Assembly (NCBI RefSeq): GCF_031769215.1
Contig: NW_026782091.1
Span: forward strand, 62,001-126,000
Length of the DNA: 64,000 nt
DNA from: Ylistrum balloti
Taxonomy: Eukaryota
Reading direction: 5' to 3'
Shown here: piece by piece, positions 19,849 through 45,460 of the stretch
Position numbering within the stretch: the stretch's first letter is position 1
How the letters are laid out: the number at the start of each line of letters is the position of its first letter
Notes under the pieces: generated by a model
Database searches by the model: none
Told to the model about the DNA's origin: nothing
Seen by the model: only the letters and a program-made list of their open reading frames with translations
Program-made: the position numbers and the translations under genes

Positions 19849-22110
19849 CTATGCTACTAGTATCTCCTCTAGTGCTTTCTTGAAGCTCTCTTTTGCCAGG
19901 TTCTTGTGAGTGAATTGACAGTTGACAATATTTACAGCACCATCCACATACTGCAACAACGAAAATTCAACTATTAGCCTGTAGCTTCTATGTCAGGATT
20001 TGCATCAAACTGTTTCCAAAATCTTATTATTTCTTTATTCTATCATGCCAATTTTTTATCGGCATTGTCAAATAAACTCGGAAATCCCCAAGACTGTCTT
20101 TACTTTTGGGTTTGTTATTGCTGACAGACCTGTTATTTAACAATAACTGAAGTAGTGAGAAAGCATGGTCGTGGTGATTTATACCAATCTGACATCATTA
20201 TTTATTGACCAAAGAGACCACTAAATCATTAAACACTAAGGACTGACGAGCTTTCAATAATCCAGCCACTTCTTCATCCCGGGACATACAACAAGATTGT
20301 AACACAGCTAGTTTACCACAACAATTTCTTTAATGAAAGATATAGACCCCGAAAACTGAATATATAGTTGAACAACTTCACTATGTTCAAGTCAGTGGGT
20401 TGAATGGATAGGAAGTTACTGGAGTGAAGATTTCAGTTCCATGTTAATCCAACTTTATAATCTGAAAGGTGAGTACAATCAATGGAGGACTTGCATGCTT
20501 TTCAATACCAACCTCTTTTAGCCCATAATCTTGATGTTGCACACAGTAGCTTAGTGATGGTTGTAAAGGCCTCAACAAGGTCACATCACCTTTAATATTT
20601 GACCTCCACATCAAGGTCACTGCCAAAGAGGAAAGCATGTGGTAAATTCTGGTTGCCATGGCAATGTCTTCTGTATTCAGCTGAGGCTGAAGAGAGATCA
20701 GATTTGATGTCACTTCTTGTACCTTGCTGTCAAAAGAATTCTTCTCCTCAAGTGTCTGAAATTGAAATGGAAAATCATCCACAAATGTTATGATTGATGA
20801 CGGACACAGTTGAGTATTTTCATGACAATGCAATCTATTCATCCATTAGTAAATAAGATAACAGTCATAGTCCACATTTTTTATCAATTAAAAGTGAAAA
20901 TCATCTAATAGTTCTCATCATTGTCAGGTATTTCTACAAGGTAAAAAATGTTAGTGAAGAATAATGTGAACTTACTTTTCTGATAGTTGTCTCCCCTGTA
21001 AGAGATTCCACAAAGCTCACGAGGATGTTGTTGTCCTGTTCATGCCAGGACAGTTTTTGGAGAGCTTTCAATTCATCTCCATAAAGTTGTGGAATGACCA
21101 CAGGACTACCATCTACCAACACAAGTTTCCCAATCTTCTTGCTATCCACATGGAACTTCTCAAGTTGTTGTCTCATTTCCATGGCAACAAGACAACCAAA
21201 TTCCACGCCTACCAGATGATACGGCTGATCTGGTATCAGAGTATCTATCTCCTGAAGAAATAATGTAACCATCACTGATATAATGATCTCTTAACTGAAT
21301 CTAATCAAAATTTAATCTCTTTAATTTGAAACTATTCAGACTCCTTTCAAATAAATTTCACTGCAGTTTTATAACAAAAACACATGCTAACTAGATTGCC
21401 AAGTAATAGTGGAGTCCTATGCCATTCATCGTCTCTACTTAACTATTTACACATCAAGATAAAAAATTGCTTCTCATATCAATCCTTAATGATCATCTGC
21501 AATAAAACATAGGACGGATTGTTTTGAGTAACCTAATGTTTGTCACCTGTAAGTAGTGGGCAGCTATTGTATGGATGGAATGCGTAGGTACATCAGTTGT
21601 CAGCTGGATTCCATACAATGGTGCAGCCACACTGGAAACCAAGTCAGCTATTTTGGAAATTGTGCCTGTGAATAACAACGCAATCCTGAATGTTTTTCCA
21701 TTACATTTTAAATCTGGGACTGTGTAGAACATGTTAATTTTCCTTTTGTATCTTTCAATTTTGTTAAATTAAATTCATTGAACAATTAATACTCGTACAT
21801 CTTACAATCTGAATAATGTGTACCTTTAACTCAAGTTACGATATAATGAATACAATATATCTGTGTACCTTTTCCCAGAGTCATCAGGTAAAGAATACTG
21901 TATTCTTGTGTAAGTTCGACACAAGTCATGATTTGATTGAAACAGTTAACTAATCTTGTTACAGTTTTGAATGTCTTTTGAATAAGAGATTCAATAAAAA
22001 TTAAAAGCTTTGTAAAATAGCATGATAAAAAATAAACATTTTGGTGAAGAAAGTATAAAGTACTCACCTCCTAAAGAATGAACGATGAAAACAGCAGGTC
22101 TGTCATTGGC
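19849..22110 (-). other. Thioesterase domain with the nucleophile replaced
   Basis: [35 protein letters not shown] (for PYRVAGYSYGACVAFEM), LVDGSP, GDVTLLR, DYGLKEYVDGAV...FTHKNL. Confidence 0.85.

Positions 22111-45460: not shown

Follow-up and report, generated by a model that had tools for sequence, protein, structure and literature searches.

A gene on the minus strand of Ylistrum balloti contig NW_026782091.1 (positions 62,001 to 126,000, the 64,000-nt stretch analysed here and called the window) very probably belongs to an old bivalve family of paralogs of canonical fatty acid synthase (FAS) of type I. Members of this family appear to have lost the chemistry of their ketosynthase (KS) and enoyl reductase (ER) domains early, and to have been kept at full length under purifying selection. 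The whole gene runs from 45460 to 19849 and consists of 29 coding exons and 28 introns, all of the GT-AG type. Its model was rebuilt independently by using tblastn with two relatives, one 78-84% identical and one more distant, followed by splice-site refinement in which every junction was settled from the reading frame, the splice signal, and the score of the alignment; four junctions were adjusted by eye. The spliced coding sequence begins at 45460 with an ATG and closes at 19849 with a TAG; it has 7461 nt and encodes 2486 amino acids (aa) with zero internal stops or frameshifts. The largest exon (34655-33452) is stop-free over its 1204 nt, and the 64-kb window is without any N. The rebuilt model recovers the limits, the exon count, the uninterrupted frame, and the 1.2-kb exon that an earlier note on this DNA had proposed from the letters alone. 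The length of about 2499 aa given there was correct in implying a full-length frame, and exceeds the rebuilt protein by 13 residues.

Pfam searches exon by exon and an alignment with full-length FAS give the domain order of the spliced protein as KS0-LD-MAT-DH-psiME-psiKR-ER0-KR-ACP-TE, which is the full animal FAS order (KS0 and ER0, inactive KS and ER; LD, linker domain; MAT, malonyl/acetyltransferase; DH, dehydratase; psiME and psiKR, pseudo-methyltransferase and pseudo-ketoreductase; KR, ketoreductase; ACP, the acyl carrier protein; and TE, thioesterase). Catalytic roles were assigned to residues according to the porcine and human FAS literature. The KS of canonical animal type I FAS is characterized by a Cys-His-His set with an accompanying Lys; of these residues, the paralog retains the second His alone. 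The nucleophile motif DTACSSS has become RNGHASG, with His170 (codon 42637-42635) in place of the Cys; EAHGTGT has become ETSGCSV, with Ser301 (41826-41824) in place of the first His; and KSNMGH has become VSNVGH, in which Val334 (41727-41725) replaces the Lys and the second His (His339) is retained. The ER domain has likewise lost its NADPH motif (GSGGVGQ to GASDIGQ, 29540-29514) and its catalytic Lys in the motif EIGK, which is now Thr1778 (28807-28805). Pfam ADH_zinc_N gives no match in the ER exons (17, 18, and 20 by name). In the TE domain, the GxSxG motif reads GVEFG, so that Glu2297 (GAA, 21203-21201) stands where the Ser of the canonical FAS Ser-Asp-His triad belongs, and Asp2327 and His2468 are retained.

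The remaining activities are preserved at every catalytic position. The MAT domain has Ser593 (39984-39982), Arg618, and His695, and the DH domain has His886 (38128-38126) and Asp1038 (36471-36469). The KR domain retains GGLGGFG (27681-27661) together with Lys1994, Ser2021, Tyr2034, and Asn2038, and the ACP domain carries the phosphopantetheine site LDSL, whose Ser2152 is encoded at 23479-23477. These catalytic alignments agree with the earlier note, which had described selective damage that hit KS, ER, and TE and spared MAT, DH, KR, and ACP. They also bear out its view that the protein could not build a chain alone, given that both the KS nucleophile and the decarboxylation His are gone. Without a KS nucleophile, the paralog by itself is predicted to be incapable of synthesizing palmitate from acetyl- and malonyl-CoA.

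Loss of chemistry does not appear to have meant loss of fold. Structure prediction for the ER region of the ortholog from Mizuhopecten gives a FASN-type ER with a pLDDT (predicted local distance difference test) score of 80.8 and a template modelling (TM) score of 0.84 to human FASN (8vle_B), a result favoured by the canonical ER sequences in the input alignment. According to this model, the ER fold is retained despite the lost chemistry.

Orthologs of the gene occur in four scallop genera, Ylistrum included. The others are from Pecten maximus (L001, 82% identity), Mizuhopecten yessoensis (P0214; 2489 aa, 84% identical from end to end), and Argopecten irradians (P0270), and all four genera have in common the KS motifs RNGH(A/T)SG, E(T/M)SGCSV, and SV(V/I)SN as well as the ER changes. 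Full-length relatives that are dead in both KS and ER extend beyond scallops to oysters, a mussel, and unionids. The corresponding KS motifs are RNGSGTS, EINGSCN, and KTNVGD in Saccostrea (P0194, P0201), and QGSDAAS and EANAIGH in the unionids Sinanodonta (P0009) and Potamilus (P0151). Mytilus edulis (P0271) carries RNGCGSG, in which the Cys is retained, and has Gly at the first His. All nine members have lost the first KS His, the ER motif, and the ER Lys, and all nine have kept the residues of MAT, DH, KR, and ACP.

These nine sequences are monophyletic in a whole-length tree of 48 sequences (SH-aLRT 100) and again in a tree of MAT, DH, KR, and ACP built under a site-heterogeneous mixture model (SH-aLRT 99). 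These supports, from the Shimodaira-Hasegawa-like approximate likelihood ratio test, come from quick searches that carry long-branch warnings. For this reason we also relied on shared derived characters, which long-branch attraction cannot create, namely the RNG motif of scallops, oysters, and mussels, a 3-residue deletion in ER, and the loss, in every member, of the first catalytic His and of the ER motif and Lys. Within the clade the unionids branch first, followed by the mussel, the oysters, and the scallops, which matches the relationships among bivalves. In the whole-length tree, canonical bivalve FAS is the sister group of the clade (83); the second tree leaves the placement of the clade among lophotrochozoan FAS unresolved. 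The stem branch of the clade is long, at 0.75-0.8 substitutions per site, after which rates are FAS-like again, and in scallops the paralog and FAS are equally conserved. This comparison with canonical FAS was made with protein branch lengths and identities and not with the ratio of nonsynonymous to synonymous substitution rates (dN/dS). The long stem followed by conservation at the scallop level therefore reflects a burst of change and then renewed constraint.

The introns of the paralog fall at the same positions as in canonical FAS of Pecten, including those that delimit the large 1.2-kb exon, and exon 15 aligns end to end with the corresponding single exon of canonical mollusc FAS. The family therefore appears to have originated through duplication of FAS at the DNA level. 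As the earlier note had supposed, an active FAS paralog is encoded by the same species: canonical FAS with all motifs is found alongside the paralog in every species checked, and in Ylistrum it is represented by P0158. The two genes lie on one chromosome in Pecten and, judged by contig identity, also in Argopecten and Sinanodonta.

The TE domain has followed a different course from KS and ER. Pecten, Mizuhopecten, Saccostrea, and Mytilus retain the nucleophilic Ser, which has given way to Glu in Ylistrum, to Ala in Argopecten, and to Glu in the unionids, where the Asp and His are lost too. Judged from these residues, the TE Ser was replaced independently at least three times within the clade, and its loss is a lineage-specific event rather than a family trait. 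The check proposed in the earlier note, whether orthologs share the same substitutions, comes out positive for the KS and ER changes, which are common to scallops, and negative for the TE change.

Selection was assessed by the NG86 (Nei-Gojobori) method in one pairwise comparison with Pecten over 2462 codons, at a dS of ~0.8. The whole gene has a dN/dS of 0.123, and the bootstrap intervals of every domain lie far below 1. By region, the values are 0.12 for KS, 0.07 for MAT, 0.12 for DH, 0.11 for psiME, 0.17 for ER, 0.06 for KR (the lowest), 0.09 for ACP, and 0.15 for TE. Values near 1, for which a domain-by-domain check had been proposed, are thus absent, as all domains fall between 0.06 and 0.17. 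Pecten maximus also has a stop-free counterpart for each of the 29 exons, with GT-AG kept at the same places.

A second line of evidence comes from independent DNA runs, which contain the sequence of the locus. One of these, run X1, bears a different organism label and is ~1.4% diverged. It covers introns and exons evenly at ~10x and is therefore DNA. When compared with this run, 1 of 863 exon bases differs as opposed to 33 of 2213 non-exon bases (Fisher p = 3e-4), which puts exon divergence ~12-fold below intron divergence. Among the differences listed for 19500-22575, the sole exonic one is at 21168 in exon 27, where a nonsynonymous change turns Gln2308 into His within the TE domain. The X1 contig spans the exon encoding Glu2297, and that codon is free of difference among the differences listed. 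Exon 23 has two differences (25284 and 25323), both of which are synonymous.

Evidence for expression comes from relatives, by way of transcriptome contigs in the supplementary data of Lin et al. 2024 (PMC10764717), whose names include the coverage reported by the assembler. Contig SRR18002372_NODE_1404 is 10,134 nt long, has unionid-type motifs, and has a coverage of 32.5, compared with 32.9 for the contig of canonical FAS from that run (PMC10764717 supplementary). SRR10802050_NODE_1110 (7,897 nt) has a coverage of 40, and SRR3714583_NODE_237 (7,687 nt) has a coverage of 27.9, whereas that run's canonical FAS reaches 47.8 (PMC10764717 supplementary). The existence of such long contigs from clade members indicates that relatives of the gene are transcribed as long mRNAs starting with KS.

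Conservation across the deep splits among bivalves reveals where constraint has been greatest. Identities among paralogs versus those among canonical FAS proteins are 0.57-0.65 vs 0.66-0.76 for MAT, 0.54-0.63 vs 0.67-0.70 for KR, 0.43-0.49 vs 0.50-0.59 for DH, and 0.44-0.50 vs 0.66-0.72 for KS. For the other domains they are ~0.3 vs ~0.5 (ACP), ~0.23 vs ~0.41 (TE), and 0.26-0.33 vs 0.66-0.75 (ER). Expressed as one figure per domain, the contrast is 0.63 vs 0.68 for MAT and 0.56 vs 0.69 for KR, as opposed to 0.30 vs 0.70 for ER and 0.47 vs 0.70 for KS. By these measures, MAT, ACP, KR, and DH keep all catalytic residues and appear to evolve almost as slowly as they do in real FAS, with the qualification that ACP is faster by identity. 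The KS and ER domains, in light of the structural model, seem to persist as constrained, folded, but non-catalytic scaffolds.

What might such a protein do? Among the readings considered, we tentatively rank first a partnership with canonical FAS, either as a heterodimer or in trans, to which we give somewhat less than an even chance. In animal FAS, KS and ER are the dimerizing domains, and in the paralog both are kept as dead scaffolds, which is why this partnership seems the most likely reading. Moreover, duplicated homodimers form heteromers by default. Through its MAT, the paralog would charge its own ACP with malonyl or acyl groups, and would reduce and dehydrate beta-keto intermediates with KR and DH. 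It would neither form the C-C bond nor saturate the enoyl product, and would thus need a KS-competent partner. In a heterodimer, or in a looser trans partnership, the ACP of the paralog would be served by the KS of canonical FAS, and the intermediates it carries would escape enoyl reduction or modulate the output of FAS.

A more specific version of this reading is doubtful, though possible. It proposes a two-gene fatty acid or polyketide system of bivalves in which the KS0/ER0 paralog and canonical FAS form a heterodimer with one competent subunit, whose product spectrum would differ from that of the FAS homodimer (unsaturated, 3-hydroxy, or shorter acyl chains) and which would have been kept since early bivalve history.

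Several observations weigh against the partnership with FAS or against the gene model. The faster evolution of ACP relative to canonical FAS fits fewer docking partners better than it fits docking to a partner KS. The identity of the paralog KS to the FAS of its own species (0.43) is no higher than that between dead copies from different orders, and so gives no sign of co-conserved interfaces. Each of these two points counts mildly against the partnership. In Pecten, the paralog and canonical FAS are on one chromosome and lie 11.3 Mb apart, for which reason tandem duplication with FAS was rejected. Run searches found DNA runs only, and no RNA run, for Ylistrum balloti. Finally, the public annotation of the Ylistrum scaffold divides the locus into two genes, with a 500-aa KS-only product and a 1976-aa product beginning at Met511, and the Pecten annotation is likewise split at the exon 7/8 junction into products of 499 and 1977 aa.

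The alternative that fares best is unlikely, yet deserves to be set out in full. Here the protein would act as a stand-alone homodimer in which MAT takes 3-oxoacyl or other acyl groups from CoA and places them on the protein's own ACP, KR and DH convert them to 3-hydroxy or 2-enoyl products, and either TE, where it is still active, or transfer by MAT back to CoA brings about release, with no KS partner involved. The intact residues of MAT, ACP, KR, and DH in 9 of 9 members and the low dN/dS of MAT and KR are what this proposal predicts, and the faster ACP, if it reflects fewer docking partners, fits it as well. Retention of the TE Ser in most lineages also favours it. However, a dead KS with a dN/dS of 0.12 is unexplained by a stand-alone enzyme unless the KS serves homodimerization only, and release becomes a problem where the TE triad is gone, as in unionids, Ylistrum, and Argopecten. 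We know of no FAS-like protein with such a stand-alone activity of loading, reduction, and dehydration. The loading step draws some support from the description of animal MAT as a polyspecific transferase (Rittner et al. 2018, as cited in PMC12058525).

A somewhat less probable alternative holds that the protein is a non-catalytic regulator or scaffold. Its ligand would be NADPH, malonyl- or acyl-CoA, or the FAS protein, and it would tune lipogenesis, for example as a dominant-negative or stabilizing subunit, with its catalytic residues serving for ligand binding only. Dead paralogs that regulate active relatives are a common pseudo-enzyme pattern, which speaks for this proposal. It is also favoured by the finding that 3 of 7 activities are dispensable and by two transcriptomes in which its transcripts and those of FAS have similar coverage. 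Nevertheless, the ten catalytic residues of MAT, DH, KR, and ACP are fully retained across lineages that split early, with the strongest constraint on MAT and KR, and this points to chemistry more than to binding alone.

That the locus encodes two separate polypeptides, a KS-only protein of 500 aa (exons 1-7 plus the acceptor at 40940) and a MAT-to-TE protein of 1976 aa from Met511, is improbable. Both public annotations do break at one same junction, and the Ylistrum window contains both the alternative acceptor and the stop that follows it. This alternative 3' splice site (40917-40940, minus strand) precedes the exon-8 acceptor by 88 nt within intron 7 and leads into seven codons (IEIIMLQ) followed by TGA; the annotated 500-aa product (P0377) equals model aa 1-493 plus IEIIMLQ. 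However, the two annotations terminate the first product by different means, namely an alternative acceptor in Ylistrum and intron read-through in Pecten. Intron 7 is poorly conserved relative to Pecten, and the alignment is too poor to trace the alternative acceptor there. Against the split also stand the better pyrimidine tract at the exon-8 acceptor (40852), the canonical phase-0 donor and acceptor that are intact in both Ylistrum and Pecten, the gene models that cross the junction in Mizuhopecten, Argopecten, Saccostrea, Mytilus, and unionids, and the transcript contigs of 7.7-10.1 kb that begin with KS in mussel-like and unionid-like members. Since canonical phase-0 sites are intact in the two scallops, and since models and transcript contigs of other species span the junction, a single 2486-aa protein is the best-supported model from the sequences at hand.

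The weakest alternative, a young or decaying FAS duplicate or an assembly artefact, could point to the several lost catalytic residues and to a TE nucleophile change that is private to Ylistrum relative to the scallops that retain Ser, but it has almost no chance of being correct given 7461 nt without a stop or frameshift, 28 introns, a dN/dS of 0.12 at a dS of ~0.8, orthologs that span four scallop genera and a deep clade of bivalves, a conserved neighbouring gene, and independent DNA runs that hold the sequence. A processed or decaying pseudogene is ruled out by the open reading frame, the introns, and the dN/dS value among these, in agreement with the earlier note, which had argued that the locus does not look like one.

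The domains are distributed as follows over the exons of the gene, all of which are on the minus strand. The KS domain and the KS-MAT linker (aa 1-493) are encoded by exons 1-7 (45460-45310, 43722-43567, 43412-43239, 42663-42463, 42331-42209, 41921-41694, and 41595-41150), which match Pfam ketoacyl-synt, Ketoacyl-synt_C, and KAsynt_C_assoc. Exons 8-11 (40852-40616, 40044-39855, 39529-39300, and 38924-38623) encode MAT (Acyl_transf_1), and exons 12-14 (38345-37975, 37691-37437, and 36518-36336) encode the double hot-dog DH (PKS_DH_N and PS-DH). Exon 15 (34655-33452) carries the pseudo-methyltransferase, which is non-catalytic, together with the first part of the pseudo-KR, and it matches Pfam FAS_pseudo-KR and, weakly, Methyltransf_23. 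Alignments assign ER0 to exons 16-20 (32012-31870, 30760-30477, 29699-29339, 28899-28777, and 28362-28151). The Pfam KR match falls in exons 21-23 (27774-27433, 27179-26933, and 25333-25103), ACP in exon 24 (23538-23335; PP-binding), and TE in exons 25-29 (22190-22068, 21665-21547, 21251-20976, 20755-20513, and 19950-19849; Thioesterase).

Intron 24 contains a short high-copy repeat at 22849-23045, where the contig word depth in DNA run X1 is ~346 versus ~10 elsewhere. The same run has many loose ends and small joints at 22839-23041.

The surroundings of the gene include a multi-exon PICK1-like gene at 9690-17000 on the plus strand, which is the counterpart of the gene downstream of the Pecten ortholog. 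The two copies give exon-sized tblastx matches of 75-100% identity, and the Pecten copy is annotated with PDZ and Arfaptin/BAR domains. Microsynteny with this PICK1-like neighbour is conserved between Ylistrum and Pecten. A further region of the window, 50362-52830, has a strong positive GC skew that reaches 0.54 at 50001-52000. It matches itself at ~88% identity in a shifted register, which fits a tandem satellite.

Comparison with known systems helps to define what is unusual about the paralog. It resembles canonical FAS in its equal domain order, in its length (2486 versus ~2550 aa), in ~41% identity, in the identical catalytic residues of MAT, DH, KR, and ACP, in the retained ER fold suggested by modelling, and in being nested in lophotrochozoan FAS. 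It differs in the replaced KS Cys, His, and Lys, in the missing ER NADPH motif and Lys, and, in Ylistrum, in the replaced TE Ser.

Animal FAS-like polyketide synthases (AFPKs), exemplified by EcPKS1 and EcPKS2 of Elysia (PDB 9cq1 and 9ctk; PMC7280274, PMC10764717, PMC11831141), are also mollusc paralogs derived from FAS, and they share with the bivalve protein an ordered but inactive ER0 and pseudo-methyltransferase. The ER0 and MT0 of EcPKS1 and EcPKS2 are described as ordered but unused domains, and an acyl-Cys187 seen in EcPKS2 demonstrates a working KS (PMC11831141). The KR and DH domains are active in AFPKs, and their catalytic residues are kept in the bivalve paralog. AFPKs differ in that their working KS makes polyketides, whereas the bivalve clade has a dead KS and has kept its TE domain. 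The AFPKs of mo-clades 1-3 are without TE and come from heterobranch gastropods only (PMC10764717). Membership among AFPKs was rejected on the grounds that the KS triad is destroyed and that the clade stands apart from the Elysia sequences in trees. The earlier framing of the gene as a FAS-like enzyme comparable to polyene-forming ones is thus sustained as to a FAS-derived paralog and dropped as to an AFPK or polyketide synthase (PKS), with ER0 as the one point of likeness to polyene producers. The first PDB match of the big exon is EcPKS1, and this is because the PDB has no mollusc FAS; canonical mollusc FAS aligns equally well or better.

Identity with mo-clade 4, which does occur in bivalves, was likewise rejected, as the orthologs are filed as FAS and a clade-4 protein scores 439 (PMC10764717). 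Three orthologs, OWF51822.1 (Mizuhopecten), CAG2191348.1 (Mytilus), and XP_022315551.1 (oyster), are among the FAS and FAS_train seeds of the FAS KS hidden Markov model (HMM) in that survey (PMC10764717). The FAS scores of those dead-KS orthologs are 593-634, as compared with ~770-810 for canonical FAS (PMC10764717). The text of this 2024 survey, which uses these sequences, makes no mention of the lost catalytic residues (PMC10764717), and no description of a KS-dead FAS paralog was found in the literature searched. Thus, the sequences are public, and the KS-dead family seems to have gone unrecognized.

Two other precedents concern partners with a dead KS. One parallel is with engineered rat FAS heterodimers, in which a fully knocked-out subunit, devoid of KS along with other activities, relies on the KS of its partner and can have its ACP served across the dimer. 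Rangan, Joshi and Smith in 2001, and Joshi et al. in 2003, reportedly found that a rat FAS dimer engineered to have one competent subunit is active. Those subunits were laboratory point mutants of one gene, whereas in bivalves a natural, separately encoded paralog would take that part.

Dead KS partners also occur in the KS/chain-length-factor heterodimers of type II PKS and as the KS0 of trans-acyltransferase (trans-AT) PKS. In the classic KS0 signature the His of HGTGT is lost and the Cys is retained. The bivalve KS is comparable in having a KS fold without condensation, and the Mytilus RNGCGSG sequence, alone in the clade, combines a retained Cys with loss of the HGTGT His. In Ylistrum, unlike in a non-elongating KS0, the Cys is gone too and is replaced by His170, and the setting is an iterative animal megasynthase rather than a bacterial assembly line. 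From these residues, even transacylation by the scallop KS is unlikely.

The usual view of animal FAS is that of a homodimer encoded by a single gene, and the paralogs known to derive from it, the AFPKs, are active polyketide synthases. The family described here adds a full-length FAS paralog, found in at least four bivalve orders, in which the activities of both dimerizing domains are lost and those residues required for loading, carrier function, ketoreduction, and dehydration are kept under strong constraint. One practical consequence follows from the annotation of clade members as fatty acid synthase: studies of bivalves that count FAS genes or read out their expression may mix an enzyme with a pseudo-enzyme. 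Similarly, the presence of dead-KS seeds in the FAS KS HMM may blur the scoring of FAS versus non-FAS sequences in molluscs (PMC10764717). More broadly, the family opens questions about natural heteromeric or trans-acting animal megasynthases, the structural part played by dead KS and ER domains, and the diversification of lipogenesis in molluscs. If the partnership with canonical FAS is real, a natural KS0/ER0-FAS heterodimer would be the first natural heteromeric animal megasynthase.

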